DNA of 64,000 nt. Source: Podarcis cretensis. Lineage: Eukaryota. Made by a program: the position numbers and the translations under genes. The notes beneath the pieces are model-generated. The model was not told where the DNA came from. It saw only the letters and a program-made list of their open reading frames with translations, and searched no databases. Positions within the stretch are counted from its first letter, which is position 1. Every line of letters begins with the position of its first letter. Below, one piece after another: positions 3,487 to 52,469 of the stretch. The DNA is taken from the NCBI GenBank assembly GCA_951804945.1, contig OX638155.1:43586001-43650000 (forward strand), read 5' to 3'.

Positions 3487-3623
3487 ATCATAGGATCATA
3501 GAGTTGGAAGGGATCCCATGGATCATCTAGTCCAACCCCCTGCAATGCAGGAATATGCACCCCTAGGGGATCAAACCCATGACCTTGGCATTATCAGCAC
3601 CACGCTCTAATCAACTGAGCTAT
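3487..3623 (-). mobile_element. tRNA-head/CR1-tail SINE (Squam2/POM-like)
   Basis: Minus strand has a TAGCTCAGTTG..GTGCTGATAA..GGTTTGATCCC head followed by the CR1-type tail CTTCCAACTCTATGATCCTATGAT. Confidence 0.8.
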
Positions 3624-9232: not shown

Positions 9233-11209
9233 GCAGGTTTAGTAGCAATGCCATGAAGGGAGAAGCTTCACTTCTGGAGCGTTTTCTACCTTGCACCTGT
9301 TAAAAGGCAGGCGACTCCCATAAGGAGGGAGGGAGTCTCACAGGGAGAGATGTATTGTGGTCACTGCAGCTTGTACATGCACATCAGTCTTTTGGCATGA
9401 CTGCTCTTGCTTTGGGCTGATAGTTTGTAATAAAGCTATATAATACACACAAGTAATGCATTAGAGTTCCACAAACCATAAATCTTCAAAGCAAGTAATC
9501 CAGGGGGTAAAAGTCTGCCTGCCTCCTCTAAGATGCCTTTTGGCTGCTCAGAGACTGTTTACATTCCATTCACTGTGTCTGTATTTACTTTCCCATATTT
9601 TCAGTTCTCTTTTCTGAATCTTAGCTGAGAGCACTGACAATCCCACACTGCACACACACCCCTGATAAAAGGCAAATACTGCTGATTTCTATTCCTCAAA
9701 AGAGCAGCCGGTGTATGCTAAATCTGAAGTCTTCATTCTTGTTTGCGTTCTTGTTTACATTCCTTTTAGTGAGAAAGATCGCCCCCCCCCAAAAAAAAAG
9801 AAAGACTGTAAAGGTCAACGAGTTCTTTGCATTTCAAGAACAATGTCATCATGCCAGGTGTGGTTGTCTATATTAGAAATGTGTTTGTGTGCTCACACAC
9901 AAAGTGTGTGTGTGTGTGGTACACATACACACTCTATAACTGAAAAATTGGCCCTCTTGGGACAGTTCCCCATATATATCCGGTCCAGAACAGCTGCTTG
10001 TGCTCCTCTCCTAGCCCATCACATTGGACCCATTCACATAGTCATAAAGTCAACACTTTTCAATAGATGAAACCAGGCTCATTTAATGCATGTCTCAGAT
10101 TACAACTCATCACATTCTTGCAGGGAGGGTAAAACTTTGCAAAGTATGCTGAATCCAGGCAATACATTTATAATCTGAGCACATCTTTCTGAACTTACAT
10201 TACACACAAAGTAGGAGTGGCTGAGGGTAAGGAGTGCAGTAATAGCTATCACTTTTTCAAACAGTCCGGTGGACAAAATGTTAAAACTAAACTCAAGGGA
10301 ACACAGGCTAAAGTCCTTTAGTAAGCCCATCTTAGCCATAGTTCTATGTTTTAAAATGTGATCATAATATATATGTGAAGTGGACTCCACACATAAGAAA
10401 TGGACATGGGCCCATATTGTGGCCCCTGTTGCTGTCCTGGGAAGAAATTCAGTGTTGTGTATTTCTGTTGGCCAGACAGAATGATCCTCCATCTCCTCAC
10501 CCTCATGCACTATTATAGGGGTCTGCCCTACAGAGTAGACTTGGGGGAGGTATTGTTATAGGAAAATTTAAGCTCACTTGGATTTGCCAAACAAAGACAC
10601 CAGCCAAGAGTATTGGAGCAAAACAGCAGCCTGTAGGAACTGTTGCAATAGGACTTCCAACTACCATATGGAAGAAGCAGGAAGAAGCCCTGAACAAAGG
10701 ATGGCTCCTTTTTTATATAAGTTTCCCTTTTTACCCACAATACCCTTAGTGAAACATCACACATACATCATATATACATCACAGCTATGTCATAATATGG
10801 GAAGGGTCTTCTGGCAGAAACCTGAGTATCAAGTTTGCCCCCATCCCTCTCTTGATCTCCACCTCACACACATTAAGTAGAACAAAGGCGAGTATGTACA
10901 TGTTCCTGTTCTCACTGTCAAGTTAAGCACACCCCTTTGTCTTGACCAAGATACTAATAAACTGTGGTTGGGTTTACTATTGTTTCTGGAATGGCTACCT
11001 GTCTGGCACTCAGGGGCCAGGATGCCAGCAATTATCATCTAGGCAAGAAGGCTGCTGAGTATGTGGTCTCAGGCTTGGGGGATGGTGGCTGCCCCTGCCC
11101 ACGTCCCAGGCTCCCCCCTTGGTAGCCATTCCTTTCCTGAACAGAACAAAGTTGGAACGGCACAAATCCGATACTGGAGCGATTTTATATGACTTTCTAA
11201 AGTTTTCCC

Positions 11210-11399
11210 TGATGTTGGGAAAGACTGAGGGCACAAGAAGAAGGGGATGACAGAGGATGAGATGGTTGGACAGTGTTCTTGAAGCTACTAACATGAGTCT
11301 GACCAAACTGCGGGAGGGAGTGGAAGACAGGAATGCCTGTCGTGCTCTGGTCCATGGGGTCACAAAGAGTCAGACATGACTAAACAACTAAACAACAAC
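11210..11399 (+). mobile_element. BovB (RTE) LINE 3' fragment
   Basis: Encodes LMLGKTEGTRRRG*QRMRWLDSV; (CAA)n tail; TSD AAAGTTTTCCC (11199-11209, 11400-11410). Confidence 0.92.
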
Positions 11400-11708
11400 A
11401 AAGTTTTCCCATTGAGCCAGCACATAGATTCATTTATCAGTGAATTGTTACATTTGGTAATGTGCAGCGATGGCCCTTTGAATAGAGATAGGAAAAAACT
11501 GTGTGATGAAGTGTTTTGTGGGAACATTTGCAGGAGTGATTGTGCTGATTTTGATAGTCAGGGGGGTGTATGATGTCTGCTGGAGGGGCAAACCTCCCCC
11601 CCCCAACCTTTCCATAAATTCTGGTAACAGTATATGGGGGGGGGGAGAGCCCTGCTGCACTAGTTGGAGCCCTTGTGCACCAGGTTAGTTGAATCCAAGA
11701 CCATGTAT

Positions 11709-18416: not shown

Positions 18417-18652
18417 CAGTGGTACCTCGGGTTACAGACGCTTCAGGTTACAGATGCTTCAGGTTACAGACTATGCTAACCCAGAAATAGTACCTCGGGT
18501 TAAGACCTTTGCTTCAGGATGAGAACAGAAATTGTGTGGTGGCAGAGCGGCAGGAGGTTCCATTAGCTAAAGTGGTACCTCAGGTTAAGAACAGTTTCAG
18601 GTTAAGAACGGACCTCCAGAACGAATTAAGGTCTTAACCCAAGGTACCACTG
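18417..18652 (+). mobile_element. Tc1/mariner (Tigger-like) MITE, family A
   Basis: TA TSD, TIR CAGTGGTACCTCGGGTTA, internal CTTCAGGTTA repeats. Confidence 0.92.
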
Positions 18653-19548
18653 TACTTGTGCACAGCCATTGCAAATACAGGCCCCATTCACATCAAACAA
18701 CGTGTTCTACACATTGTGAGGAATGCTGAACCAGGTTGGCGGTTGGTTTTGTGCCCTGCCATGAGCAGAATATAGACACGGGGTCCTTGTGTGAACAGGT
18801 CCCATGATGCCAGTATGAGTAAGCAGCTGAGATTCTATTTGCAAGACCTGTGGACATTTTACTCAAAAATAAACTGCTGCTATTAAAAGAGCCACTTAGC
18901 ACATGTACTTTGTTTCTTATCAGTTTGCTCTCTCTCTACAACAAAGACTAGGAAAATATTGGCATGAGTCATTGCTCTTGTAAGATGATGCACATACCCT
19001 CCAAGCAGGACAGTCAACAGCCATATTAAGTGTGGCAATAGTGTGGGCAGTGCAATCTGTGACTGATCTATCAACAATAATCTATAGTACTCACTCACTC
19101 TGTTTCTCTCTCTGTTTCTCCCCCCCCCCTTTTTTTTTAATGGGGTGACTTAAATGTTCTAATAAAATGAAGCAGTGGAATGTTTCCAGATGTCCACAAC
19201 ACTAGCAGGAAGAAAGTGCTCTAAGCCTAATGTTCTACCAACCCAGCATCCTTTCCTTATTAAATCATTCTTCCACTTCAACTTCTGGGGCAGGAGGTTG
19301 TAAAGAAGGAAAAAAGAAAAAGCTCACAAAAGTGTTTTGACAAATCCTTTCAAACCACACCAGGATAACAGTGACAGCAAAAGTCTGCTGACCAAGTTAT
19401 TTAACTATGTGTTTACATCCCATTTATTTCCATGGGGTTTCTTAGTGCCAAGGCTTCTGAGGATGGCAGTTGTTTAACCTAGCAAGGACTGAACTGCTGC
19501 ACATGCAGCTTGCCTCATTTGTTTTAATAAAGGAGCAGCTATACATGC

Positions 19549-22309: not shown

Positions 22310-22463
22310 GAATAACAGAGTCACAGAATTGTAGACTTGGAAAGCACCCTGAAGATCATCTAGTCCAGCCCCCTGTAATGCAGGAATATGCAACTGTCCC
22401 TCAAGGGGATCAAACCTGCAGCCCTGGCATTATCAGCACCATGCTCCAACCAACTGGGCGATC
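22310..22463 (-). mobile_element. tRNA-head/CR1-tail SINE (Squam2/POM-like)
   Basis: Homologous to 3487-3623. Confidence 0.78.
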
Positions 22464-23835
22464 CATTGAAGAACTGTGTCAAGCAGAAACTCCATGGATT
22501 TGGTTGTGAACATCACTGCATTCTCCTCTTAGTGGAAAGCTGAAATTCTATTTCTCAACATACTGTCATTCAGCTGAGGTTTAAGAAAATAGGCTCACGG
22601 GTGTTCTATGATATAAGAGAGATCTGTATGGATGAGAGGCAGGCAGAAACTAAAGAAAGCAGAAGAAAAATTAGGAGTGAGGGCATAGAAACCAAACTTT
22701 TAGAATACTTAATGATAATAATTACATTATTTATTTTACTTGTTGGTTAATGTGAAGACAAAAAGAGTGCAAAGAAAGAAAGAGCTTCATATGGAAGCAA
22801 TCTGAATTTTCAGGGAATAAAAACAAGTAACATCTTTATGTCAAGCATGATTCAGTGCATCATACTGTATTTAATTATAACTGGGATGGTCTGGTAGAGT
22901 ATTAGGCAAGTTGCAAGTTTCTGGCTTTGGCTGCTTAGGTAGATGCTTGTTTCCAAAGCTGCAGGCACAGTGTAAATCACATCAATGACAGATATCCTCC
23001 AATTTTGTATTTATATTTTTTCAGATTATAACATTTACCACATCCATTATACTTTTAAGCCACTCTTTAGGCTAAAAGATTAATTATGTTCTGCATCAAT
23101 ATAGACTGAGCAATAAATACCAAATCATTAAAATGTATATTCTTTTCCACTCAATCCTTATTCTAATTTTTTGTGTGCAGTGCAAAAAACCCAGTGTAAT
23201 AATCCTGGTAGGGATTATCAGATGGGCACACAGGAAAGACAAGCACAGAGATTTGCTGGTTTCCTTGCACCGTACTAGCCAAAAACCTGTTACAATTTCA
23301 TGTGATAAAGTTTTTCAGGGCTTCATGTCTTCTTTGATAGGTAAGTGTCTGTTTGTTGGTATGCCACTTATTATTCAGAAAAGACTGAAACATCAGGAAT
23401 ACTGAACAGGGACATATGTGGATATATCACGAGTCACATTTCTTATCCTCTTTGTCTTGCACTTCCAGCTACAGTTTGTGTGGAGCATCTGCAAAAGAGC
23501 AGTGTGGATCAGCTTTGGGGGGGGGGTCCCCAAAAACTGGCAAAAAAGGGTGGAATCTATTTGATGGGGACAACTGACCTGCACCCAGTTATAGGGATTT
23601 TTTTATATATAGTAAACCTTGAGATGAGTTTAAGAACACTTTCAGAAAAGTGCAAGCTAAACTTAAATATCATTGCATACAAAGAAACGCAGGTGATGAG
23701 TTTTCATGGGGCATCTTGAGTCATACCCACTAAGTTTCATGACATGGGGCTAAAGCAAAAGAGCAATGATGTTTCCACCAGTCCAATATTATTTTAATAA
23801 GTGGGTCACTTACAAGGGATGGTTGATGGCCAAAT

Positions 23836-26243: not shown

Positions 26244-26748
26244 AACCTAGACAGCATCCTAAAAAGCAGAGACATCACCTTGCCAACAAAGGTCCATATA
26301 GTTAAAGCTATGGTTTTCCCAGTAGTGATGTATGGAAGTGAGAGCTGGACCATAAAGAAGGCTCATCGCCAAAGAATTGATGCTTTTGAATTATGGTGCT
26401 GGAGGAGACTCTTGAAAGTCCCACTGCAAGAAGATCAAACCTATCCATTCTTAAGGAAATCAGCCCTGAGTGCTCACTGGAAGGACAAATCGTGAAGCTG
26501 AGGCTCCAATACTTTGGCCACCTCAATAGAAGAGAAGACTCCCTGGAAAAGACCCTGATGTTGGGAAAGATGGAGGGCACAAGGAGAAGGGGACGACAGA
26601 GGATGAGATGGTTGGACAGTGTTCTTGAAGCTACCAGCATGAGCTTGACCAAACTGCAGGAGGCAGTGGAAGACAGGAGTGCCTGATGTGCTCTGGTCCA
26701 TGGGGTCACAAAGAGTCGGACATGACTAAATGACTAAATTACAACAAC
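26244..26748 (+). mobile_element. BovB LINE 3' fragment
   Basis: NLDSILKSRDITLPTKV..VMYGSESWTIKK..IDAFELWCWRRLL; near-perfect TSD AAT(C/T)CCAATCTT. Confidence 0.95.
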
Positions 26749-31248: not shown

Positions 31249-31502
31249 CGGAACAAAAGTTACAAGAAAGGAGATTCTGACTAAACATTAGGAAGAACTT
31301 TCTGATGGTAACAGTTGTACAACAGTAGAACAGCCTCCTTAAGTAGTTGGTGGACTTTCCTTCCTTAGATGTTTTTAAGCGCAGGTTAGATGGCCATCAG
31401 TCATGGATGTTGTAGCTGAGATTCCTGCATTGTTGAGGGTTGAACTAGATGACTCTTGTGGTCTCTTCCAACTCTATGATTCCATAATTCTAAGATTCTA
31501 AG
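31249..31502 (+). mobile_element. CR1 LINE 3' end
   Basis: AGATTCTGACTAAACATTAGGAAGAACTTTCTG...CTTCCAACTCTATGATTCCATAATTCTAAGATTCTAAG octamer tail. Confidence 0.85.
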
Positions 31503-34812: not shown

Positions 34813-35174
34813 GTAAAGGTAAAGGTACCCCTGCCCGTGCGGGCCAGTCTTGACAGACTCTGGGGTTGGTGCGCCCATCTCACTCAAGAGGCCGGGGGCC
34901 AGCGCTGTCCGGAGACACTTCCGGGTCACGTGGCCAGCGTGACAAAGCTGCATCTGGCGAGCCAGCGCAGCACACGGAAACGCCGTTTACCTTCCCGCCA
35001 GTAAGCGGTCCCTATTTATCTACTTGCACCCGGGGGTGCTTTCGAACTGCTAGGTTGGCAGGCGCTGGGACCGAGCAGCGGGAGCGCACCCCGCCGCGGG
35101 GATTCGAACCGCCGACCTTCCGATCGGCAAGCCCTAGGCGCTGAGGCTTTTACCCACAGCGCCACCCGCGTCCC
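34813..35174 (-). mobile_element. Full-length Sauria SINE
   Basis: Closely similar to 7416-7780; 12-bp TSD ATTCTTGTCTTA (34801-34812, 35175-35186). Confidence 0.95.
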
Positions 35175-36391
35175 ATTCTTGTCTTAATCATGGTTAAAAG
35201 AAAAGAAGACCTAAGACAACAGTATCCTTTGGGAGCAAAAGCACTTTATAATATGAAGAGGATCATCTGGGGTTCCTATTGTACTGCGTTTTTGCTCCCA
35301 ATGCATCTTTTTACGAACATTAAAAGAGTAATGGAAAGTTTTGTACAATGACTGTAGTAGTGAAACTCTATGTTGAAATCTTGGTAACAGTGGCTTCACA
35401 TACAGGTTTTGTGCTCATTTAAACGGACTCAACTTGTGGCTGATTTGGACAGGCATCAAATTATCTTATTGCTAAACTTGCTGGCCCTCTAGTACCCAAG
35501 TTCTTCTCTCGCCTCTCAAAAGTAACTAAAAACTGATTTAAATTGTAATTTCCAGATCTTTCCAAACAAGTAGACAGCAGCATGAGTTTAACTATAGTAA
35601 TGATTTATTCAGCACATCTCCAAACTGATCACAACCTTAAGGATGTGCTGAGCAAGGAAATAAAGAATTTTGTGTTGGAAATACAATTTTGCTACCAGCT
35701 TGCAATTCAAGCTTTACTCCTCCTGATTTACAGAGGGACAATCCTAGAAAAATATTGTGGAGTGGGCTCCCACAACTACCACTGATGACCACATAGGTCA
35801 CAAAGGTATAAACACATGTATGACCCTCATTCAAATGGGCACTGACTAATCCAGTTTATTTTCTCCAAGACCAGCTCTGATCTCATTCACTTAAATGGGA
35901 ATAGCATATTAGGCAACATTTATAGGCAATGTTCTTCCCCTGTCACTCAGTAAACAATCTTGTACTTGTATACAAATTAAAGAATGCATCCTCTGCCATG
36001 CAATGCGAATGAGCAAGAAAATCCAGTAAGATACCAGAATCATAGAAGAAGAAAAAGAATAAGCACTTATATTTTTGCTCTATTTCCTCTCTAACACCAT
36101 GGCTCTGATAGAAAGACACATAGCCATTGTCCCCTGAAGTCCTTAGGGTTTCTATTTCTTATATAAGCCTGATTCTTGATTGGCAGATGTGTTTGCATAT
36201 ATTACACACACACACATGTGCTCACTTAATGTGAGGGATGGAGTTCATACCACTGGCCTAGTAGTCTGTTATTTTTTCCTGTGGAGACTGCACATATCAC
36301 TCCTCTAACATATGTAATGCCTTGTGGCATAGATATCTCCATACATTTTTGTGGGTAGAAAAAAAAGCCACCAACTCATCCTACTTTTACT

Positions 36392-39170
36392 TTTTTTATA
36401 TAATAATTTTTATTAATTTTCTAATTTTAAAACAAAGCAATAACAACATAGGAACATCATCAGATACAAACAAACACAGAGATATAATTTCTTAACCTCA
36501 TTTTCATAAACCTCCTTTCTCGGACTTCCCCATACCTCACCCTTTTTGCATCCTTATTTTACAGTTTTTCAGCAACCCTTTTTACCAATTAGATTTAAAC
36601 TTATTATCTTTCTCAATTTCCCCTTAAATTATCAAACAGTTTCAGCTGTAATTCTACATCTTCCTTCCCCTTGACATTTTAGCACTCCTCAATTTTGTAA
36701 CAGTTCTTAAGATATACTTTAAACTTCTTCCAATCTTCCTCCACCATCTCTTTCTCTTGGTCACGGATTCTGCCAGTCATTTCTGCCAGTCCCATAAAGT
36801 CAATCACTTTCGTCTGCCATTCTTCCAGTGTGGGTAATTCTTGTGTCTTCCAATACTTTGCTAGAAGAATCCTTGCTGCTGTAGTGGCGTACATAAAAAA
36901 AGTCTTATCCTTCATTGACACCAATTGGCCGACCATGCCCAAGAGAAATGCCTCCGGTTTCTTATGAAAGGTACATTTAAGTACCTTCTTAATATCATTA
37001 AAAATCATTTCCCAAAAGACTTTAATCTTTGGGCAGGTCCACCAAAGGTGAAAGAAGGTGCCTTCAGTCTCATTACATTTCCAACATTTATTATTGGGCA
37101 GATGATAAATCTTCGCAAGCTTGACTGGGGTCATGTACCACCTGTAGATCATTTTCATAATATTTTCTCTTAGGGCATTACATGCCGTAAATTTAATACC
37201 GGTGGTCCATAACTGCTCCCAGTCAGCAAACATAATGTCATGGCCTATGTCCTGTGCCCATTTAATCATAGCTGACTTAACTGTCTCATCTATTGTATTC
37301 CACCTCAGCAGCAAATTATACATTCTTGATAAGTTCTTAGTATTGGGTTCTAACAATTCTGTTTCTAATTTCGATTTCTCCACCTGGAAGCCAATTTTCC
37401 TGTCTTGTTTAAAGGTCTCCATTATTTGATAATAATGGAGCCAATCTCGTACCTTGGACTTCATTTTCTCAAAACTCTGTAATTTGAATTTGCCACTTTC
37501 TTCTTCTAAAATTTCAAAATATTTTGGCCATTTGGATTCCATATTAAGTTTCTTCACCTCCTTAGCCTCCATTGGTGATAACCACCTAGGAGTTTTATTT
37601 TCCAGCAAATCCTTATATCGAATCCAAACATTGTATAATGCTTTCCTAACAATATGGTTTTTGAAACCCTTGTGAACTTTAACCTTGTCATACCATATAT
37701 ATGCATGCCAACCAAACCTATTGTCGAATCCTTCCAAGTCCAGAATGTCTGCATTCTCAAGAAGTAGCCAATCTTTCAACCAGCAAAAAGCTGCCGATTC
37801 ATAGTACAGTCTTAAGTCTGGCAGGGCAAACCCCCCTCTTTCTTTTGCATCAGTAAGTATCTTAAGTTTTATTCTGGGCTTTTTGCCCTGCCAGACAAAT
37901 TTCGATATATCTTTCTGCCACTTCTTGAAACAGTCTAGTTTATCCACAATTTGTAATGTCTGAAACAAAAATAACATTCTAGGCAATACATTCATTTTAA
38001 TCACTGCGATTCGACCTAACAAGGAAAGCTTCAAGTTCGACCATATTTCTAGATCTTTCTTTACCTCTGTCCAACATTTGTCATAATTGTCTTTAAATAA
38101 GTTCACATTCTTAGATGTCATGTTAATCCCCAAATATTTTACTTTCTTTGCCACCATTAACCCAGTTTCATTTTGAAAACTCTCTCTTTCAACATTTGTT
38201 AGATTTTTTTCCAAAACTTTGGTTTTTTGTTTGTTCAGCTTAAATCCTGCCACCTGACCAAAGACTTGGATTAACTCTAAGACTCTTTTTGTACTAGTGT
38301 CTGGCTCTTGTAAAGTCAATACTAAATCATCTGCAAATGCCTTCAATTTATAATGTTTGGCTCCGACCTGAACTCCTTTTACCAGCTGGTCCCCCCTGAT
38401 CATATTCAGCAAAACCTCCAGGACTGATATAAAAAGTAATGGGGATATTGGGCACCCCTGCCGTGTCCCTTTTTCTATAGAAAGTTCATCAGTAACCACA
38501 TTATTTACAATTAACTTTGCCTTTTGTTCAGAATATATTGCACCTATACCATTTTCAAACCTTTGGCCTACCCCCATCCCGTGGAGATTCTTCTTCATAA
38601 AATTCCAAGAAATATTATCAAAGGCTTTCTCCGCGTCCACAAAAATTAAAACTGCTTTTGTGTTGATATTTACAGTCAGCAGTTCCATAAGGTCAATTAT
38701 GTTCCTTACATTGTCTGATAAATGTCTTCCTGGGAGGAAGCCTGCCTGATCCTTGTGAATCTCCTCCACCAATACCTTCTTCAGTCTTTTTGCTAAAATG
38801 TCAGCAAATATTTTGTAATCCACATTAAGTAACGATATGGGGCGGTAGTTCTTGATCTGATTTTTTTCAGTTTCAGTCTTTGGTATAAGTGTAATGAAAG
38901 CTTCTTTCCACGATTCAGGTGCCTTTTCCCCCTCTAATATTTCATTACAAACCTCCTTAAGCGGCTGTATTAACCATTCCTTCAATGCTTTATAGTATCT
39001 GGAGGTTAATCCATCTGGTCCTGGAGATTTCCCTAATTGCATATTTTGAATGGCACCCTCTATTTCTTGATCTGTTATTTTCTCATTTAAAGCCAACATA
39101 TTTTGTTGTGAGATTTTTTGTAATCCATGTTTCTTAAGAAAATCTTCTATATCTCCTTCGTTTTCCGGCC
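36392..39170 (-). mobile_element. 5'-truncated young LINE-1 (L1 clade)
   Basis: Perfect 17-bp TSD CTCATCCTACTTTTACT at 36375-36391 and 39171-39187. AATAAA and a short A-tail on the minus strand. Contains an ORF2 RT. Confidence 0.96.
36679..39099 (-). CDS. L1 ORF2p fragment (reverse transcriptase + C-terminal CCHC); endonuclease lost by 5' truncation
   Basis: Motifs KSPGPDG, YRPISLLNVDYKI, DAEKAFD, GTRQGCPISP, FADD, KYLGI and CWKC..FFHLWWTC. The frame stays open up to the truncation point near 39168. Confidence 0.96.
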   Translation of the reverse strand: MLALNEKITDQEIEGAIQNMQLGKSPGPDGLTSRYYKALKEWLIQPLKEVCNEILEGEKAPESWKEAFITLIPKTETEKNQIKNYRPISLLNVDYKIFADILAKRLKKVLVEEIHKDQAGFLPGRHLSDNVRNIIDLMELLTVNINTKAVLIFVDAEKAFDNISWNFMKKNLHGMGVGQRFENGIGAIYSEQKAKLIVNNVVTDELSIEKGTRQGCPISPLLFISVLEVLLNMIRGDQLVKGVQVGAKHYKLKAFADDLVLTLQEPDTSTKRVLELIQVFGQVAGFKLNKQKTKVLEKNLTNVERESFQNETGLMVAKKVKYLGINMTSKNVNLFKDNYDKCWTEVKKDLEIWSNLKLSLLGRIAVIKMNVLPRMLFLFQTLQIVDKLDCFKKWQKDISKFVWQGKKPRIKLKILTDAKERGGFALPDLRLYYESAAFCWLKDWLLLENADILDLEGFDNRFGWHAYIWYDKVKVHKGFKNHIVRKALYNVWIRYKDLLENKTPRWLSPMEAKEVKKLNMESKWPKYFEILEEESGKFKLQSFEKMKSKVRDWLHYYQIMETFKQDRKIGFQVEKSKLETELLEPNTKNLSRMYNLLLRWNTIDETVKSAMIKWAQDIGHDIMFADWEQLWTTGIKFTACNALRENIMKMIYRWYMTPVKLAKIYHLPNNKCWKCNETEGTFFHLWWTCPKIKVFWEMIFNDIKKVLKCTFHKKPEAFLLGMVGQLVSMKDKTFFMYATTAARILLAKYWKTQELPTLEEWQTKVIDFMGLAEMTGRIRDQEKEMVEEDWKKFKVYLKNCYKIEEC

Positions 39171-39918
39171 CTCATCCTACTTTTACTAACGTGAGCCCAA
39201 TGGATGTCCTGGGCTGCCTCCCACAATTATCTAGTTCAAGTACCTAGTTCTGCCACAACACAATACAGTAGTTCTAGCTGCAGTCTCAGAAAGATTATTT
39301 GGAGGAGGGACAGAATCCAACTGAGGGAGACATGGTGAGGAAAAGACAGTGAAAGTCAGATGAGCTTCTAGCAGTATTCAGGGCCAAGGTTATGTCCTAA
39401 GATATGTGCCCTAACTCAGTATTTGCTAGTCCCATGCCTTCCAGATGTTGCGGAAGGGCACTGGGTTGGTGAAGGGTACCCTAACCCATTTCATCTTAAG
39501 CAGTAGCTATCACATAGGAATTCAGACACAGATGGATAGCTAAGTGCATCCCACACATTTACATGGCTGCTACTGAGTGGGAGATAATTTATGGTGATTA
39601 GTACAAACTGCGAATGGGAATTGTTCTGAGAAAAAATACTTGCTCTTCTTGTGGGCTCTTGCCACTTACGTCAGTGTGGAAAAGATAACATTAATCTGCA
39701 ATGATTTTACTACATACTTTTGCACTTTAAGATTTTGCATTTATTCCCAGAGGGTGCAGAATGTTTGATCTGGGAAACAACTGCAAATTAAAAGGATCAC
39801 TTCTGAATGATTCAATTGGACTTCAAAATCAGATGTTCAATTCAAAGTATACATATTTTACTGCCATAACTTTTTAAAATGAAAGGGAAAAGAAACTGCT
39901 AGAATTCACTTCAGATTA

Positions 39919-40144
39919 CAGTGGTACCTCGGGTTACATACGCTTCAGGTTAGAGACTCTGCTAACCCAGAAATAGTACCTTGGGTTAAGAACTTTGCTT
40001 CAGGATGAGAACAGAAATCATGCTCCGGTGGTGCAGCAGCAGCAGGAGGCCCCATTAGCTAAGGTGGTGCTTCAGGTTAAGAACAGTTTCAGGTTAAGAA
40101 CAGACCTCTGGAACGAATTAAGTACTTAACCCGAAACACCACTG
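39919..40144 (+). mobile_element. Tc1/mariner MITE, family A
   Basis: Homologous to 18417-18652. Confidence 0.9.
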
Positions 40145-41571
40145 TGAGCACTTGATAGCAGCAGATGCTGATGAACAACAGGCCAGAACCAGAATCTATT
40201 ACACAGGAACATAAATGAGCTCCAGCAACTCCTGTATAACTGGTGAATATGGGACTCTGGTTTGAAATTGTGGCATAACTAGTCAGAACAAAAGAATGTT
40301 AATATGCTGAATGCTGTCGGTCTTTGCCATCTAAGTCATCAGGAACTACATTGTGATAAATACCCTGAAACAAGGATAGAAAATGTATTGTTCTGAATCT
40401 TAGATATGTAGGATGCAGTTTGCTCAAGCCCTGCATGCTTACAATGATGATATCGCCCATCAGTACTAAATACAAATTGCACACCAAGCAAAGCATTTTT
40501 CCTCAATTTAAGAAAACAAGGGAAAATGTGGGTGAAAATAGAATTGCTGTTGCAGTGTATGAGTCCCATTAATTACCCAAATCAACTGCTGTCAAAACGT
40601 GTTGGGTTCCTCCACACACACACACACACATTTGGAGCCTTCTTGGCCTTCATTCAGTCTGTCAACCTACTAGCAATAGAGACACATGAATCCGTCAAAA
40701 CAGCTCAGAGAACTTCTGTATGGACCACTGGTTTTGCCACCGCCGCCCCCCCCCCCCCCGCTCAGCAGTCAGAAGGTTCCTGAGCCTAAAATAACTTGAT
40801 CAAGTATGCCAAGTGTAAGCATTAGAATAGACTTTTAAAATGCGTTCTATAATTTGTATATGATGGGAGCTTACCTATCACTTTAGAAACATTCAGCTTT
40901 CAATAACAGAGTGGGAGTGGCAAAGTAAGAGCACAATAATTCTATTAAGCTTTTGACTTGTCACAATCCCTGCCAACATGCTCTGCAAAGTAATATAATT
41001 ACATTTCATCCTATGGGCCAAAGTGTACTCCAACTAACTGCACAATCCAAACCAAATCTATTCAGAAGTCAGATTGAATTCCCAGGTAAGTGTGGTTAGC
41101 ATTTATTTCAGATTTCAATTCTTTGTACACAACCACCAACCCTTGAACAGAATCTTTCTTCTCTCATGGCACTCCTCAGTTACTATTTTTGATGTTATAG
41201 GCCAGGCAGCAACACAATGTGAAGAGGCCAGTATTTTCAGAATAATCATGAGGCAGAATATCAATGCCTAAAATGATGTTTATTTACCTGCTCACTGTTA
41301 ACATTACTTGATTAGATATTTATAGGGTCTGGCCTGGCAGTCCCCCCCCCCCACAGAGCTACAATTCCCAGCCTCCTTAACAAACAACAGCTCCCAGGAT
41401 TCTTTGGGGAAAGTCGTGTGCTTTAAATGTGCACTGGATGTGCTTTAAATGCAGGGTGTGGATTTAGGCTGTCATCCAGAATGCTAACAGCAAAATCTGC
41501 ATTGCCACAGCTCTTGGGATCACAGTAACATAACAAACTGCTCTACACTGATTCAGACCAGGGATCCATCT

Positions 41572-41815
41572 TGTTATGTATTGAAGTTCTCAGCCTGGCC
41601 ACCAGGGGTACTGTGTATATAGTTTTCACTCAGGTCCACGTCAGTTACTTTAGGCGGGAAACCCTGGGTTGTTGTTGCTACAATGTTGATAGCCGGCTGC
41701 CTATAAAAGCAGGCCGGCTGAGCTATTTGCTGCTCAGTGCTGTTCCAGCTTACAAATAAAGAGCTGCTTTGGAAGAATCGCTGTGTCGTCTGATATGTTC
41801 ACCCACAACTTAACA
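41572..41815 (+). repeat. 5' LTR
   Basis: TG...CA ends, TATAAAA and AATAAA; 5 differences from the 3' LTR. Confidence 0.95.
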
Positions 41816-41816
41816 C

Positions 41817-41995: not shown

Positions 41996-42558
41996 ATGGC
42001 TTCACTTGTGCCTCTACTACCGTTTGCCCCAGCCTCTGAATCATGGGACTCCTACCTCGCTCAGTTCAACTGCTACCTCCAAGCAAATGAGCTGACAAGA
42101 GGGTCTGTAGAGCAGAAGCAGGGCCTCTTCCTCAGCCTTGTGTCCCTGAGGTGTTCGCAATGGCCCGAGCATTGGTTGCACCTTTAGCAGTCCAGGCAGC
42201 ACTGTAGGACATGATTCAAGAGAAGCTCCGCAACCACTACGCGCCAAAGCCGACCAAGATTGCTGCCCGCCATGTGTTCTACCACCGGAACCAGGCAGAG
42301 GGGGAGTCAATTAACAACTACACCGCCATCCTCTGACAAGCTGCAATGCACTGCGAGTTCCGAGACTTAGACGATGCCCTGATGGAGCAAATCGTCTGCG
42401 GAGTCTGGGACATCCGTCTGCAACGCCATCTCCTCGCCAAGCCAGACCTCACACTGCAGAAAGCCACTGAGGAGGCCATGGCCTCAGAAGCTGCTGAACT
42501 CTCCGCTCAGGAAATCCACAAGGCCAGTAGCCCGTATTTAAAAGACTATGTTCACTGG
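41996..42558 (+). pseudogene. gag: Decayed Mag-type gag (capsid region) fused to last codons of pol
   Basis: FAPASESWDSYLAQFNCYLQAN..., then LRNHYAPKPTKIAARHVFYHRNQAEGESINNY, CEF and IVCG..LQRHLLAKPDLTLQKA. One frameshift and two stops. Ends PYLKDYVH, resembling a pol C-terminus. Confidence 0.85.
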
Positions 42559-42697
42559 ACAAACTGCACGTGTAAAGCTGTATGGTGAATAGGGTCAGTT
42601 AATATGCTTATGTGCCTTACTGAAACCAATAAGGGTATTGCTGTATGTAATGGAACCACTATGATTGTAACTAATGCCTTATCTTGGTGGGGAGGGG

Positions 42698-42941
42698 TGT
42701 TATGTATTGAAGTTCTCAGCCTGGCCACCAGGGGTATTGTGTATATAGTTTTCACTCAGGTCCATGTCAGTTACTTTAGGCGGGAAACCCTGGGTTGTTG
42801 TTGCTACAATGTTGATAGCCGGCTGCCTATAAAAGCAGGCCGGCTGAGCTATTTGCTGTTCAGTGCTGTTCCAGCTTACAAATAAAGAGCTGCTTTGGAA
42901 GAATTGCTGTGTCGTCTGATATGTTCACCCACAATTTAACA
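42698..42941 (+). repeat. 3' LTR
   Basis: Direct repeat of 41572-41815, preceded by the purine tract GGTGGGGAGGGG (42686-42697). Confidence 0.95.
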
Positions 42942-43153
42942 CATCTCATCTCTACTGTTGACACAGACTGGCAGTAGTTCTCCAAGGTTTCAGGAAGGAG
43001 TCTTTCCTGAGTCAACCCAGAGATGCCATGGACTGAGCATGGAATCTGCCTTTGAAGAGTAAAACAAGTGCTGTAACTCAGGTCTATAACCCTTCTTCAT
43101 AAATATTGCAATGCTGCTTGCAGAAAAACTGAAGGGACAGAAAGAGGGAATTG

Positions 43154-43422
43154 TGTTGTTGTTTAGTCGTTTAGTCGTGTCCGACTCTTCGTGACCCCAT
43201 GGACCAGAGCACGCCAGGCACTCCTGTCTTCCACTGCTTCCCGCAGTTTGGTCAAACTCATGCTGGTAGCTTCGAGAACACTGTCCAACCATCTCGTCCT
43301 CTGCCATCCCCTTCTCCTTGTGCCCTCAATCTTTCCCAATATCAGGGTCTTTTCCAGGGAGTCTTCTCTTCTCATGAGGTGGCCAAAGTTTTGGAGCCTC
43401 AGCTTCATGATCTGTCCTTCCA
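43154..43422 (-). mobile_element. BovB LINE 3' fragment
   Basis: MKLRLQNFGHLMRREDSLEKTLILGKIEG; CAA tail. Confidence 0.93.
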
Positions 43423-46400
43423 TTTACATATTTTAAATTTGGCCAAGATGGGTTTTTTAAATAGCTAACAGTTATTAATCATTTAGTAAATAGAAGTAGG
43501 TCTACACTACACATATTACAAAGTACTCCTTGCTGCACAAACTGATCTCAGTTGTATATGCTCACTGCCCCTTGCGGCACAGCAAGTTACTTTTTAAATG
43601 AGATGCATCCGTTTCAGAGCTTTGCACCAATTTTCAGCTGTTTGTTATACCAATCCCAGAGAGAAGTATCACAAATCCATGATAATTTAGGCTATTACAT
43701 GTGCAGTATAAACATAGTGTAAGCAAGTAGGAGCGAGAAACAAAAACGTATAGAAAAATAAATCCTCTGCCGCAGGTATTGTGAGAAGCACGAAAATCAT
43801 ATTACGTTTGGGTGTGAGGAATCAACAGGAAGGAGAATGCACCACCTTGCCATGAGTTTTCCTTTAAAACAAAAATATGACTGTGTTGAGAGGGTTTTGT
43901 TCTTCCTGCTTATTAGAAGTAACCTATACTATGAGCAGAAAATCCACAACATGGGGTGGAGGTATATCCTGTCTGAGCTGGGAAGAAATGAATAAGAAAT
44001 ATGCATTGCCAAGCCATTTAAAATAAAACTTCTAGAGCCTCTTTAAATTGTTACATCTTGAGTAAAGAAAAGTGCTGAATTATGTAAAAGCAGGCAGGGA
44101 GCCAACATCTGGCAACAGTAAAATTGTTTTGGAGGCGAGCAGTTTCCATCCAGCATGGAAACCTGGGTCCACGCAGCACAGGATAACGGATCTATGAAGA
44201 TGTACAAGAGCTCTGGTTGCCAGAAGGATACCCTGGGCTTTGAGTGAAAATTTTTCTGTCATTTGATCTCCTAACACAGCCAGCTGAGATGAGTTATGCT
44301 TCCCCCCACCAGGAACCTCGAAAGAATTGTTCAAACCATACACTCATTCCTGCTGAATTGGAAACAAATGCCACAGCCGCACTGTTGGGCTTTGAAATCA
44401 AATTCACCCCAGCTCTTCCTAAACTTCTGTGAAGGAAACAAAGCTCTTTCCTGTGTGTGCCACTTTAGTCTCCATGGACAGGCCTCCTTTCTGCTGTGCC
44501 CCTCATCTCCTCCGCCACCACTAGCAGATTGCAATCTTTCATTCCAGAAGGCCACATCACAGACTTGCCCCATGTGTTAACTATACTCTGTTTGCCGCCA
44601 TTAGGTCATGCCATTGGGAATGGAGTCTCCTAATTAAGCCCAGAGTATGGGGAACAAGTAGACTCCTCAAGACTGCACTGATCATGCTGCTGCTTCTTAT
44701 TCTGCTGCTTCTCTCCCCTGCAGGAAAGTAAACCTGATTTACTAGCTGCAGTGTTCATGCCAGGGGACTCATACATTCATTGAGCTGCACCTAAGCATTG
44801 GGTACATGAACTATATATGTAGTAGCTATGGGTAATAGCAATGCACCCTCCTTTGAGAGCTTCACTGCTAGAAACCACTGGGTTTCCCAGTATCCATTAG
44901 GATGAATGCGGCATTGCCCCACCAGCCTCAGCCTTCCCCTGCCTGCCTGCCTTCTTACAGCCAGTCTATGGAGTGTGGTGGCTGGGAGTTTCCTCCTTCT
45001 TAGTCTCAGTGTTGTCCTTGTAGAACTCAGCAGGGAGGAGAAAATGCTAAAATTGGATTGCTTTCTCTGTCATTGGCTCTGGCTCCACCTGCTTTGGGTC
45101 TCCCCGCCTTCTTCCCCAGCAGTCCCCTTGGGCACTAAGCCATCAACAAACCACACCAGCACTTGGCAATAGGCTGGCTACAATAACCTTTTATGTGGTG
45201 GAACCCCAATTTTGGAACACGCTTCCCAAGGAGATAGGGTGCTACTATTACACTCTTTCCGCTTTCTGTTCTTATTTGTCCACCCATTTAGGTCCTTTTT
45301 AATCTAGCCTGCTTTTTGTTTACTCCACTCTGGAGTAAGGGATAAAGGATGGCTACGAAATATTTGAAACTCATAAAGCAATCTCTGTCCCAACAAGGGC
45401 CAGTATTACCATTAAGTAGGAGAAAAGGATCTCAGGGAGAGATGGTAAGTTGTTGGGGGGGGGCAGAGCTGTACATCCCACACACCCTGTCCTGCAACTC
45501 CTATGCTAGCCCGGTGCCCCGAAAGGCAGTGGAGGGGGCTGCCCTGTCAGCAGCACTGAAGTAAGATTCAACTGCCATTATGTCTGTGGAGTGGTGAGAC
45601 AGGCATCATCTTGTCTATCTCGGGTAGAACAATATCTTGCACCAGCCACAGTCCCAGCTAAGGGCTATCCCAAGAGTTTGCAAGCTTAAAGCAATAGAGA
45701 AGCAACCTTTGATTGTGTTGCATGTCAGCCCACTATCTGAGAGGTGCAAAATTCCAGGGGTTCCAGGCATTTACCCAGGGTTCAGGTTTCCTTCTGGAAA
45801 TGAGACACAGCCGAGACTGTGGTGTCTTTATGATAATAATGGTTTATATACCCAAATATACAGCCTGAGCCTATGATGGAGGGGTTCACAGCATTAACAC
45901 CCCAAAGGGGTCTTGTTTCTTCCATAGCCACAGACTTAGATTAAAGCAGAAATCAAACTTAGATTAAAGCATCTCAGATGTTAATCTGACTCTCTCCAGC
46001 TTGTTGCTTTACTTCTAGGTCACATCACTGCAACTCGACTATAAACTCTGGTTTCGTTCTTCTAACTAATGGTGTGCTAGGGCAGGGGCCATACCCATTT
46101 GCCATCTCACAGAGCCCATTTCCTTTGTTTTCCTTATTGACCCATCACCCAGGCCTCAACACCTCAACACCGTAAACTAGCTTGGCTTATAGTCGAGTAC
46201 TTGCTGGATCCAGGGGTTAGAAGAATCTCACATTCAGCCAACTTCCTCCCCCACTCTCCCCAAACCCCTCCTAACAATACACAGAGAGAGAGAGAGATAG
46301 AGGAGAGAGAAATTGTCTATTGTAACCAAAGTTCCAACCAAATTTGGCCCTATGGTTCCCGATGTAAAGGAGCTGGTTTTTGTCTATGTTTGGATACAAC

Positions 46401-48445: not shown

Positions 48446-49043
48446 AGTCTGCTCACCTTTCTCAGTGGGCAGTGTTGCAGCTAGGCATCCGGGTCCCTGC
48501 TGTGATCTGGCTTAGGGGCAGGGGCATGACGCCCACTTGTGCCAACCCCAGCTGCGTCACCAGCACTGGGCAGAGCCATGCCAAGAATGGCTCTGCTGGC
48601 CAATCATTGCCGGATCTCCCAACCCACCTGCAGATATTCTACTGGCACTTGTGCAAGAGTTCCCAAAAAAGGAGCACTAATACAGTTCTCCTTTCCCACA
48701 TGGTTCTTTGGATCCAAGCCATTATCTTATCACTTGCAAATTGAATAATGATAACATCCAGACAACCATTATCACAAGCTTGACAAATTTGGCATTTATT
48801 TGACTGTCATATATAATTTTGATGCCTATTATTTTTCTAACGTTAACCCTGATGTCTTCCTTATGTAACTGAATTATTCTGTTTATTCCTATCGTCCTAT
48901 ACCATACATACCTAAGACAATGTTTGCTTCTTCATGCCTTCTACATTTCCCTTTCATTGTTTTTGCTGTTGCTCTCCTTGGTTTTGTTCCTACTTAAATA
49001 TGTAATTAAATTTTTTTTTAAGAAAGAAAGAAAAAAGATACTA

Positions 49044-49261
49044 CAGTGGTACCTCTGGTTACGTACTTAATTCGTTCCAGAGGTCCATTCTTAACCTGAA
49101 ACTGTTCTTAACCTGAAGCACCACTTTAGCTAATGGGGCCTCCAGCTGCCGCCATGGTGCGATTTCTGTTCTCATCCTGAAGCAAAGTTCTTAACCCGAG
49201 GTACTATTTCTGGGTTAGCGGAATCTGTAACCTGAAGCGTATGTAACCCGAGGTACCCCTG
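49044..49261 (-). mobile_element. Tc1/mariner MITE, family A (reverse orientation)
   Basis: Reverse complement of 18417-18652; TA flanks. Confidence 0.9.
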
Positions 49262-50958
49262 TATATTAAGGATAATATATTATGATAACCCCAGTGTTTG
49301 TAGTACATGAATAACCAGAATTTAGAAAGATACTTAAGTAATCTGGGAAGACCTCTCAGCAAACACACACATAACTGTATTATTCTCTGGAAATAAAATG
49401 GTAAATGAGCCCTTTTAAAAGCATTCATTTGGGATTATGTCCTTTGTGAGGAAGCTTGTTGGAATAATGCTGCCAATTGCTTATAATTTTATATCAAATC
49501 TTCCTCTGAAAAACAGCCATATGCATCTTTAGATTCGTCTATTCATGGTAAAATTTGTATATGGCTCTTCCTTCTTAAAAATTCATGAAGCAGAGAATGA
49601 AACGGAAGCATACCTACCATATCCATGCATCTTTAGCTTACACAACAAAATAACTATTGATTAAATTGCCTATATTAGGGTCTATATTATGCCCCCACAC
49701 CTAATCCAGGCTGGCCTGGACAATACCCAACTTGGATACACCGTCAAATCAATTCGAGTAAACACTGCATCCCTCTCTGAATCTGGTGCACAGCCCTAAT
49801 ATATATGCCATGTCTAATAAATGAAATGTGGGTGTTTACCTTCTGAATTAGTTCAAATACATATAATTCTAATGGTCTAAACTGAACTGTGCCACTGAGA
49901 GAAATTAATTTAATAGTAAAACATCATCATCCAGTCTGAAAAACAAAAGGGAAATGCAGGCTCCTACAATTCAACTTATTTATTCGTTTAGCATTTTTAT
50001 TTATTTTACTTTTCTGCCAGAAGGAGGCCTTCAAAGTAGCTTACAGACATGAAACCACAATAAAACAGACTTCCGGGTTAGCACCTCCGGCAATGGCGGA
50101 ATTCCTCTGATCGGGAGGAATTTGCTCCGTGGAATTCAGGGTCTGGCCGCCACGGCGAAGGCGGAGACCCATTAAAAATCGCAGGCGGGAGAAGCCTGTG
50201 AACGTGTGATTCGGCCGGCACCTTTTGTGCCTCCCCTACTCGCGGGGAGACCCGGTTTCGGGGATCCAGAGTGGTGTGGGGTGAGCGGCGCAGTGCTTCG
50301 AATTGACTGCTTCTTTCACGGAGTGAAGCTGCATTGCTGTTGCCGGAGAGCGCTGACTTTTTCCTGTGGACAATTTGATTCTAAACAACTACCCATGAGT
50401 AGAACGGAAAATTGGATTTTTAAACGTCTTAATTTGGCACCGAAACGGGGAGGTTTCAAACAGGAAGTCCGTCTTCCCCTTTTGTAAATAGATTGAAGCA
50501 AAGAATTTGCAAGCTAAAGTCCTGGAAAGTCCTATGTAAAGGATTAAACTTCCATCGGCTAAAATCATTAACCCCCCCCCCTTGGAGGCAGGAGAAGAGG
50601 GGGGAATTTTTGGATCGTGTAAGCCTGCAGGAGAGAGTGAAGAAAGTTGGATTACCACCGCTCTGAACCTGGAAACGGACTGCTAGTAAGACTGACGTTT
50701 TTGGGAAAGTTCATTGACTGTGACAGTTAGTTAAATAAGAGAAATACATTGTTTCCATTGTCTCCTTCTGCGCTTAAAAAGGAGTAAAAGTAGTTGAAAA
50801 TTGAAACTAATCTTACTGCATGAACTGTGCTTAAAAGGATTGATACAAACAGAAATTGTTTCCTCTAGAGGGAGCCTTTGAAATTGTTATAAGAGTTGGG
50901 CTGGTGGAATCTCCAGCTGCAAGAAAAAACCGTGAGATTGACCTTGGATCGCTTGAGA

Positions 50959-51660
50959 ATGTCGACAGAAGAAGCCTTAGTGATTGCATTAGGCAAGATA
51001 AGTGAGTCATTGGAACAGCTCCACAAGAAGACGGATGTGATGAATATTAAAATTGATATTTTGGGACAAAAAGCGACTAATTTGGGACAAAAAGTGAACA
51101 TCTACACAGAAACTATTCAGGAACTGATACAGGAATCTACTTTGACATGCCAAATGGTGGAGAAAGCGAGGGAGAAAGTTGTGGTTGTTGAACCTAAAGT
51201 AATACAAATGGAGAGGGAGAGAGCCCCAGCCTTACAGAGGCAATTTGATGACTACAAGTTGTTGCCCTCTATGATTGAATTCAGAGAAAGTCAGATTGGA
51301 ACCCTGCTTGGACTGGAGAAGGAAAGTTGGATAGATCATCTCATGCAGGGATTTATTGACCTTTGGGATCTGGACTTGGGTCAGGAGGAAATTGGAGTTG
51401 TGGGGACCTTCAGATTTGAAGGGGTTTTGAAACACGTCCTGAAATATCTTTTAGATTTTAGTTTTAATCACGGAGATGTGGATGACATGTCGAGAAGGAA
51501 TAAAAACATTGCTAGGTTGGAGCTCCCCCGAGACCTACTCTTCAGCATCAAAGGAAGGAAATTAACAACAAGATTAGCAGAAGACAAAGTATACGAAGAA
51601 GACTTGCAGAAGGGACCTGGAAAAGAGTTAAGAGCCTCGGATAGAAGATCACCAGGTTGA
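50959..51660 (+). CDS. L1 ORF1p-like coiled-coil protein, 233 aa from first ATG (ORF track starts at TTG 50896)
   Basis: Uninterrupted ORF inside the TSD-bounded element, in the ORF1 position. Heptad-patterned N-terminal half (ALGKISESLEQLHKKTDVMNIKIDILGQKATNLGQKVNIYTETIQEL). The C-terminal half only loosely resembles the ORF1p RRM/CTD. Confidence 0.7.
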   Translation: MSTEEALVIALGKISESLEQLHKKTDVMNIKIDILGQKATNLGQKVNIYTETIQELIQESTLTCQMVEKAREKVVVVEPKVIQMERERAPALQRQFDDYKLLPSMIEFRESQIGTLLGLEKESWIDHLMQGFIDLWDLDLGQEEIGVVGTFRFEGVLKHVLKYLLDFSFNHGDVDDMSRRNKNIARLELPRDLLFSIKGRKLTTRLAEDKVYEEDLQKGPGKELRASDRRSPG

Positions 51661-51785
51661 TGGACTATATGGATTTGACGGAAATGACTGGCAGAATCCG
51701 AGAACAGGGAGAAGAGACGGTGGAAGAAGATTGGAAAAAGTTTAAAGTTTATTTATAGAAATACGGTAAAATTAATGAGTGTTAG
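51660..51785 (+). pseudogene. Remnant of last 41 codons of L1 ORF2
   Basis: MDYMDLTEMTGRIREQGEETVEEDWKKFKVYL*KYGKINEC* versus L1 IDFMGLAEMTGRIRDQEKEMVEEDWKKFKVYLKNCYKIEEC*; 28/41 identical by hand count. Confidence 0.92.
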
Positions 51786-52469
51786 AAAAATGTTGGAATG
51801 AAATTATATGGCTTTAGTAGAAGTGTTATAAGGAGTTAAGCATAAATAAGTATTATAGTATTAATGGAAAATAAGGTTAAAATAAGTTAAGATATTTATA
51901 TGACTGAAAATAGTGAAAGATGGAAAGGAATTGCTGAAACAATTAATAGAAGTGGAATACAAAAAGGGAGGTGAGAGGAAGTCGATGAAACAAGGGAATG
52001 AAAGATAAGGCATTGAAATGGTATGATGCATGTTTTTAAATTGTTTTTGTTCTGTTTTGTTTAGTTTAATGCGTTAATGTTGTGTGGTGCATTGTTTATA
52101 TATTGTATTGTATTGTTTTTTCTTTCTTTTTTCTCCTTTTCTTTTTCTTCTTGTTTGTAAGGTTTAAAAGCAATAAATATTATTTTTTAAAAAAAGAAAC
52201 CACAATAAAACATCACAAAAAATGTTTTAAAACATAGGAAGGGCAAGTTGTCAATAACTCTAATGCAGCAGTCTTTCTCAACTTGGTGTCCTCCAGACTG
52301 CCATGCTGGCTGGGGCACATGGGAGTTGTCGTGTGAGTTCTGAGGGGCATCAAGTTGAGGCAGACCGTAATACAGTGGCAAAACCAATAATAAAGAGCTA
52401 AGCAGAAAAAATCACTCAGGGTAAGGGCTCAGCAAAATACTGTCCGCACAGTGGAGTGCAAAGTCTGCA

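Follow-up and report, generated by a model that had tools for sequence, protein, structure and literature searches.

Introduction

L1 retrotransposons are accompanied by several kinds of non-autonomous partners, namely RNA-only short interspersed elements (SINEs), SVA-type composites and mammalian half-L1 (HAL1) elements with a whole ORF1 protein (ORF1p). Internally deleted or spliced L1 insertions of the SpIRE type are, in turn, sporadic dead-end products. According to PMC5753468 (citing Smit 1999; Bao & Jurka 2010), HAL1 elements encode only ORF1p and arose several times independently in mammals. Our full-text literature searches, which do not extend to the catalogues Repbase and Dfam, returned no description of a HAL1 element in squamates.

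Here we describe an L1-derived unit from the lacertid lizard Podarcis cretensis. It is located at 50068-52195 of the forward strand of a 64,000-nt stretch of DNA (GenBank assembly GCA_951804945.1, contig OX638155.1, positions 43,586,001 to 43,650,000), which is called the window below. The unit had been pointed out in an earlier analysis of the letters only (the sequence-only reading). Our results make it likely that the unit was retrotransposed recently, as a complete copy of an old and diversified lacertid L1 derivative, which is non-autonomous, has kept its open reading frame (ORF) and is half-L1 in design.

Structure of the element

The unit and its flanks contain the following features.

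50051..50067, + strand: 5' target-site duplication (TSD), 17 bp, identical to 52196-52212
50068..50958, + strand: 5' untranslated region (5'UTR) and presumed internal promoter, from CpG observed/expected ratio and GC profile
50959..51660, + strand: 233-aa ORF, a truncated derivative of lacertid L1 ORF1p by open-frame statistics and homology; stop TGA 51658-51660
50965..51213, + strand: coding part of the predicted coiled-coil helix, residues 3-85 (AlphaFold, heptad pattern, heterotrimer model)
51415..51420, + strand: site of the in-frame 40-aa (120-nt) deletion of the RRM core, residues 153/154, from alignment to full-length ORF1p P0003
51655..51660, + strand: junction of ORF1 and ORF2 tail, source of the stop codon, placed by the end of ORF1 homology and the start of ORF2-tail homology
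51660..51758, + strand: remnant of the last ~32 L1 ORF2 codons, ending in TAG, in frame +2 relative to the ORF; aligns with the C-terminus of the neighbouring ORF2
51759..52188, + strand: 3'UTR with AATAAA at 52172-52177, from GC skew and sequence
52189..52195, + strand: short A-tail, 7 A, from sequence
52196..52212, + strand: 3' TSD, 17 bp, identical to 50051-50067

The unit is 2,128 bp long, starts with GACTTCCGG and is flanked by perfect TSDs. The 17-mer GAAACCACAATAAAACA is identical at 17 of 17 positions in both flanks, and these were its only two matches in the window, even when 2 mismatches were allowed (chance expectation 0.04). None of 100 shuffled sequences contained two matches. We therefore confirm the 17-bp TSD and the 2128-bp unit of the sequence-only reading. 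The TSDs enclose a unit that ends in an A-tail behind a poly(A) signal, as does a product of target-primed reverse transcription. The first strand would have been nicked at TTTC/AT on the bottom strand. L1 endonuclease prefers TTTT/AA, and the presumed nick site is close to that consensus.

The 5'UTR measures 891 nt, in agreement with the ~890 nt given before. The CpG observed/expected ratio was 0.83-0.97 over its first ~350-400 nt (50068-50450) and 0.4-0.55 further on, with a GC content of 47-61% across the CpG-rich windows and 38% in the last of them. The region is CpG-rich as claimed, but the enrichment covers nearer the first third of the 5'UTR than its first half. The first bases, within GACTTCCGG, form an ETS-like CTTCCGG motif, and the 5'UTR is presumed to act as an internal promoter. 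We also observed a pair of repeats elsewhere in the window (7474-7792 and 34863-35186, 93-96% identity), which contains GACACTTCCGGGTCACGTGG with the same ETS-like CTTCCGG core. This repeat and the half-L1 unit may have the core in common by chance or as part of a promoter.

The 3'UTR (430 nt) consists of a purine-rich stretch followed by a T-rich stretch, with a GC skew of +0.66 to +0.81 at 51700-52099. The poly(A) signal is followed by a very short run of 7 A. Both the 3'UTR and the A-tail were found as described.

The ORF runs from ATG at 50959 to TGA at 51658-51660 and encodes 233 aa without interruption, exactly as reported earlier. Its open frame from stop to stop comprises 254-255 codons, while the largest one in 2,000 shuffles had 167 codons (P ~5e-9 from composition). 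There is no second ORF of at least 120 aa anywhere in the unit and no coding capacity for an endonuclease or a reverse transcriptase (RT). The ORF itself gave no Pfam hit, and the absence of both enzymes was thus upheld. An autonomous L1 has an ORF2 with APE endonuclease and RT; here approximately 32 C-terminal codons of ORF2 are left.

Homology of the ORF to lacertid ORF1p

We compared the ORF with 1.8 billion representative proteins by phmmer and obtained 16 matches. Every named source was a lacertid (Podarcis raffonei, P. lilfordi, P. muralis). Natural sequences were used throughout our comparisons, with neither consensus nor repaired ones among them. One group of matches consists of full-length ORF1p-like proteins of 344-362 aa, namely P0003, P0009 and P0013, together with parts of the mis-joined gene models P0001, P0006 and P0007. 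P0001 is 63% identical over ORF residues 1-126 (E 5.7e-30), and P0007 is 55% identical over residues 156-232. The other group consists of short proteins that are described below. Alignment of the profile of the short family with that of the full-length proteins (hhalign) gave a probability of 99.2% and E 3.5e-19 over 204 columns, collinear and with one 40-aa gap.

The full-length lacertid profile matched the human ORF1p chains 2ldy (RRM-CTD domains), 2ykp and 2yko over RRM and CTD (E 0.006-0.012). Further, the best PDB matches of the AlphaFold model of P0003 were the human LINE-1 ORF1p trimer (E ~4e-8) and the RRM 2w7a. Profiles and predicted structure together identify the full-length lacertid proteins as true L1 ORF1p. 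The 233-aa ORF is homologous to bona fide ORF1p by way of these lacertid proteins and, judged from the alignments, derives from lacertid L1 ORF1p.

Other searches returned little. Pfam Transposase_22 did not match the ORF at E up to 10, where only weak coiled-coil noise was seen. It did not match the full-length lacertid ORF1p at E up to 1 either, and therefore its silence on the ORF means little. A phmmer search of the PDB with the ORF alone gave nothing beyond coiled-coil noise from chemoreceptors. The word-index protein search found a single protein, P0001, with the whole ORF, four proteins with the family profile and no matches with the C-terminal half of the ORF. No relatives were found in the metagenome search with the single ORF protein, and no near-identical protein was present in the protein databases searched.

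A chimera made of the 3' half of the short family and the 5' half of a modern L1 was considered and rejected, as both halves of the ORF are similarly closer to full-length ORF1p. Among the Podarcis gene models, P0001 is an ORF1 N-terminus fused to the middle of ORF2, P0006 is a TRIM39-like N-terminus fused to ORF1p, and P0007 contains an ORF2 tail with pieces of ORF1 and ORF2. These chimeric models probably reflect errors of annotation or additional L1s with internal deletions.

The junction of ORF1 and ORF2 tail

Homology of the ORF to P0007 extends to Pro232 (51652-51654). The DNA of the ORF2 tail is 77% identical over 130 nt (51658-51787) to an L1 fragment located elsewhere in the window, beginning exactly at 51658, and its translation aligns with the C-terminus of the ORF2 of this neighbour at 36679-39099 (- strand). 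Since ORF1 homology ends at 51654 and ORF2-tail homology begins at 51658, we placed the join at 51655-51660. The junction itself supplies the stop codon TGA of the ORF. It reads CCAG/GTTGATGG; the neighbouring L1 has AG just before the homologous TGATTGAC, in a register that is not a clean fit.

The ORF2-tail frame extends from ATG 51660 to TAG 51756-51758 (32 codons) and is open over 37 codons from 51645. The sequence-only reading had counted the last 41 codons of ORF2. The ORF2 tail stands, but its length was a small over-count, because the DNA just upstream of the tail is native 3' sequence of ORF1. For the last ~13 residues of the ORF we considered an origin from out-of-frame ORF2, on account of a WK..L similarity, and rejected it, as P0007 shows native ORF1 up to Pro232. 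We also observed that the stop of the ORF overlaps the ATG which opens the 32-codon frame (TGATG, within 51656-51664). This is an arrangement used for termination-reinitiation.

Short relatives of the ORF

The short proteins are represented by five sequences of 199-215 aa (P0002, P0010, P0014, P0024 and P0008), which are 23-43% identical to the ORF. Three more sequences, nearly identical to P0010 and located on other contigs, fall into its cluster, which gives eight short sequences in all. P0008 is annotated in Podarcis lilfordi, and the others come from SRA assemblies. All five representatives begin at, or shortly behind, one and the same internal Met of ORF1p, have the same 40-aa gap in the RRM to within one or two residues, and end at the same aligned position, …RASDxRSPG. 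A further protein, P0005 (174 aa), is cut short at the C-end and shares the N-terminal loss and the RRM gap.

In a maximum-likelihood tree (224 columns), 7 short and 9 full-length sequences were separated by a split with support of 100/99. The ORF had a branch of 0.14 changes per site, next to the full-length group, and the other short proteins had branches of 0.4-1.0. We observed two sub-lineages. The first contains the ORF, P0008 and P0005, and the second contains P0002, P0010, P0014 and P0024, with an additional short C-terminal deletion.

As the full-length form is ancestral, the triple truncation is read most simply as having arisen once, from a lacertid L1, followed by deep diversification in which the frame was kept open, since even the distant relatives of 199-215 aa share the three losses. 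It appears far less likely that three matching indels and an identical stop came about repeatedly and independently.

These data also bear on the possibility that the unit is a one-off, i.e. a single L1 with internal deletions or a mis-spliced RNA, whose ORF is open because the event was recent. Such an event would agree with the presence of one copy only in the 64-kb window, with the lack of near-identical proteins in databases and with CAG/GT at the junction, which could be read as splice-like. We nevertheless consider it very improbable. Three truncations and the C-terminal end are common to eight sequences of 23-43% identity, which come from other loci and species, two of the three losses recur in a ninth sequence, the C-terminally truncated P0005, and the tree separates short from full-length proteins at 100/99. 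The same data support the earlier proposal of a self-propagating non-autonomous family rather than a single deletion.

Several points weigh against a recent copy of an old family. The ORF's own subfamily was absent from the protein databases, where the nearest short relatives are 40-43% identical. The ORF is nearer to full-length ORF1p (54-63% in parts) than to its short relatives, and its grouping with the latter rests on the branch that separates the full-length proteins and on the shared indels. That the relatives stop at the same join of ORF1 and ORF2 tail is deduced from their protein ends only. Finally, the very long branches of the other short proteins could mean that there was little constraint on the protein.

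Losses and predicted fold of the ORF protein

The start of the ORF corresponds to an internal Met of ORF1p, and the basic, Ser-rich N-terminal region of ~50 aa is gone. Of the motif NLRIRAVPE (beta1), the four residues NLRI were lost (P0003 155-158). The loss in the RRM core amounts to 40 aa (P0003 199-238) and removes beta3, alpha2 and the beginning of the strand behind them, as defined in the control model described below. The ORF ends ~35 aa earlier than full-length ORF1p, with nothing retained after '…RRSP', and conserved positions of the CTD were lost as well. The complete architecture of coiled coil, RRM and CTD is therefore not present: the coiled coil is there and the RRM is incomplete, with most of the sheet that follows alpha2 gone as well.

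We modelled the ORF by AlphaFold with an alignment of 15 sequences, and P0003 as a control with eight sequences. The ORF was predicted to form a single long helix at residues 3-85, with pLDDT of 86-97 for residues 1-70 and ~60 by residue 80. No confident fold was obtained for residues 108-233 (pLDDT <50). The control yielded a confident coiled coil, RRM and CTD (pLDDT 70-90 over RRM and CTD), with the RRM elements beta1 155-161, alpha1, beta2 192-198, beta3 208-214, alpha2 217-229 and beta4 240-243. Because the control folded well on a thinner alignment, we take the loss of the RRM fold in the ORF as real. Comparison with L1 ORF1p by structure and profile, which had been suggested as a check, thus confirmed the ORF1p homology at the hhalign values given above, but neither the Transposase_22 match nor the RRM fold.

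A standard RNA-chaperone role of ORF1p is unlikely for this protein, as no foldable RRM is predicted. The proposal that the element supplies its own RNA chaperone was not supported, given that the RRM core, part of beta1 and the N-terminal region are lost and that no confident fold follows residue ~108.

We used survival of the heptad pattern, in place of the ratio of nonsynonymous to synonymous substitution rates (dN/dS), as a gauge of constraint on the protein. In the ORF, 87% of the a/d positions are hydrophobic vs 25% of the other positions, over 11 uninterrupted heptads; the values for full-length ORF1p were 73% vs 19%. In the other short proteins they were 65% vs 34%, with a peak only at register shift 0 and a signal mostly in the first ~45 residues, although an alignment tends to set hydrophobic residues over hydrophobic ones. 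Conservation among the short proteins was uneven, and the blocks around G.VGTFGF and the C-terminal RDLRASDxRSPG were retained. The alignments argue that the protein has been under some selection, at least in its N-terminal coiled coil. The conserved C-terminal block could reflect conservation at the RNA level.

It should be considered here, as the main alternative, whether the family is real and mobilised by L1 while its protein is without function. Selection would then act on an open, translated frame only, or the frame would be open simply as the active founders are young, and the amino acids would drift. The frame itself could be favoured through ribosome engagement near nascent ORF2p or through escape from nonsense-mediated decay. 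We regard this explanation, including these two routes, as rather unlikely, although much of the data fits it. The short proteins have very long branches and are only 23-43% identical, the ORF protein is without the RRM core, the N-terminal region and conserved positions of the CTD, and its C-terminal half has no confident fold. In addition, the a/d hydrophobic pattern is gone from the second half of the coiled coil in short-protein lineage B. However, all relatives keep their heptads in register over the first ~45 residues, with 11 heptads in the ORF, conservation is uneven with the two blocks retained, and the start and end points did not change through the whole divergence.

Possible mechanism of mobilisation

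We return to the preferred explanation, that of a copied, ORF-keeping L1 derivative. The unit would be copied in trans by the ORF2 protein of an autonomous L1, via target-primed reverse transcription. The short protein, translated from the unit's own RNA, would trimerise by its coiled coil, either alone or mixed with co-expressed L1 ORF1p. Such an assembly would bring the RNA of the unit into the helper particle and within reach of ORF2p, and the same co-assembly could dampen the helper. Within the preferred explanation we favour this trimerisation and RNA-tethering mechanism, although tentatively and with somewhat less than even confidence.

We modelled a heterotrimer of two P0001 coiled coils (residues 52-190) and ORF residues 1-125. 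The interface score ipSAE was 0.66, while the best control reached 0.01; in the calibration, 51 of 78 solved complexes attained this mark, as did 2 of 108 mismatched pairs. The three runs shared at least 89% of their contacts, and the pLDDT of the partners was at least 72. The predicted contacts were parallel and in register with an offset of 51, and the interface of the ORF comprised residues 3-92. The model supports a capacity of the short protein to join a trimer of the ORF1p type.

Other observations speak against an active role of this kind. The score of the complex may only reflect likeness to the solved human ORF1p trimer, the binding being a prediction. Human L1 cannot retrotranspose without the N-terminal region of its ORF1p (PMC5940361), and a reporter with ORF1 alone depended on a functional ORF1p (PMC11260458). 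Taken together, these two reports imply that the short protein should be inactive as ORF1p by that standard.

The predicted co-assembly with the L1 ORF1p coiled coil would also agree with a domesticated gene derived from ORF1, or with a dominant-negative L1 inhibitor that is kept by the host. We find such an origin hardly credible. The ORF lies inside a TSD-flanked retroposon with its own 5'UTR, an L1 3'UTR and an A-tail. Its relatives are found on many short, repeat-like contigs, with near-identical copies on different contigs. There was no sign of a fixed single-copy locus, and damping of L1 would be a side effect of the parasite. A dominant-negative action of the short ORF1 protein, which the sequence-only reading had also proposed, may occur, and the model supports in-register co-assembly with an L1 ORF1p coiled coil.

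A more far-reaching version of the tethering mechanism would be protein mimicry. The parasites, an old lineage in lacertids, would have given up the RNA-binding module of ORF1p and would keep, under selection, essentially the coiled coil, and this nascent stalk would co-trimerise with the ORF1p of the helper, drag the RNA in and poison the helper. This is speculative and, in our opinion, unlikely to hold in full. If true, LINEs would be parasitised here in a way that differs from that of SINEs and also from that of mammalian HAL1.

Neighbouring L1 and other repeats of the window

The sequence-only reading had seen a relative of the likely helper 11 kb away from the unit. We found there the following feature.

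36100..39160, - strand: 5'-truncated L1 fragment, ORF2 from RT to C-terminus (RVT_1 E 6.6e-38); 3' limit near 36.1 kb approximate

This neighbour is ~3 kb long and has an 806-aa open frame (36679-39099, - strand) with an RVT_1 domain and no endonuclease part. Its homology stops near 39160, and the truncated 5' end is 10.9 kb from the half-L1 unit. Comparison of the unit with the window by self-BLAST revealed no second copy, only the 130-nt ORF2-tail match to the neighbour, and the 3'UTRs of the two are not alignable. By these comparisons the neighbour belongs to another L1 family and cannot act as helper itself. The supposed relative is a dead, 5'-truncated L1 with 77% identity over a 130-nt tail and a 3'UTR that does not align.

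A short interspersed repeat occurs in three copies with 84-95% identity (18443-18654, 39917-40145 and 49042-49263). One of them is located 0.8 kb upstream of the half-L1 unit, and one adjoins the truncated end of the neighbouring L1.

Other repeats were observed as well. A direct repeat of 245 nt (98% identity, copies 1,126 nt apart, 41572-41816 and 42698-42942, + strand) brackets the ORFs 41996-42187 and 42346-42588 (+), whose translations resemble fragments of retrotransposon Gag. The pair could be a remnant of a long terminal repeat element or a local duplication. Another repeat is present in three copies that are 90-92% identical, at 43149-43423 (-), 11207-11405 (+) and 26478-26747 (+). 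The 86-aa ORF at 43163-43423 (-) appears to resemble the conserved C-terminal end of a Bov-B/RTE-type LINE ORF2 (…RRRGWQRTRWLD…KSRTRLND). SINE-like repeats related to tRNA were found at 3487-3626, 22321-22465 and 31421-31488, with a weak Rfam tRNA match at 3556-3625 (-) of 30 bits against a gathering threshold of 29.

Comparison with known systems

Short families of this kind would provide a natural set of 'deletion mutants' for comparison in retrotransposition assays. Annotation of such units is likely to go wrong, as with P0006, which is fused to a TRIM39-like gene model, and with others that are called 'hypothetical proteins'.

The truncated ORF1 proteins of defective human L1 loci suppress L1 in trans, and this effect needed the N-terminus (PMC5605252). 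Such ORF1 fragments can therefore interfere with full-length ORF1p. The lizard protein is similar in that it consists mainly of the ORF1p coiled coil, comes from a transcript of the defective L1 type and could mix with functional ORF1p. However, the human proteins are stop-codon mutants of ordinary L1, whereas the truncation in the lizard is heritable in a propagating lineage and the N-terminal region is missing. Our case would bear on whether defective ORF1 proteins shape an arms race between coexisting L1 families of lizards.

With SpIRE-type insertions the unit shares a TSD-flanked insertion from which an internal part of the L1 RNA is missing. It differs from them in that the deletion pattern is common to deeply diverged relatives. 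Compared with L1 ORF1p, as in the human trimer (2ykp/2yko/2ykq), the ORF is homologous to and collinear with lacertid ORF1p and has a heptad-perfect coiled coil that is modelled in register. It has, however, no foldable RRM, no NLRI of beta1 and no Transposase_22 match. An ORF1 remnant that stays open through deep divergence after loss of the RRM would bear on what ORF1p, or merely its coiled coil, contributes to gaining ORF2p in trans.

The closest likeness is to mammalian HAL1 elements (PMC5753468). Both are derived from L1, have a 5'UTR and an ORF1 gene without ORF2, end in an L1 3' end and an A-tail, and need ORF2p in trans. A complete ORF1p as the sole protein is not found in the lizard, where ORF1 is incomplete (it lacks its N-terminal region, 40 aa in the core of the RRM and ~35 aa at the C-terminus) and a short coding piece of ORF2 is retained. 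The unit stems from a lacertid L1 and has an independent origin. Descent from the mammalian HAL1/L1M lineages does not fit, as the relatives found were all lacertid L1 ORF1p or short derivatives of it, which agrees with the independent squamate HAL1-like lineage proposed before. In summary, the unit has kept the coiled-coil stalk and lost the RNA-binding core, a design that is not described for mammalian half-L1 elements.

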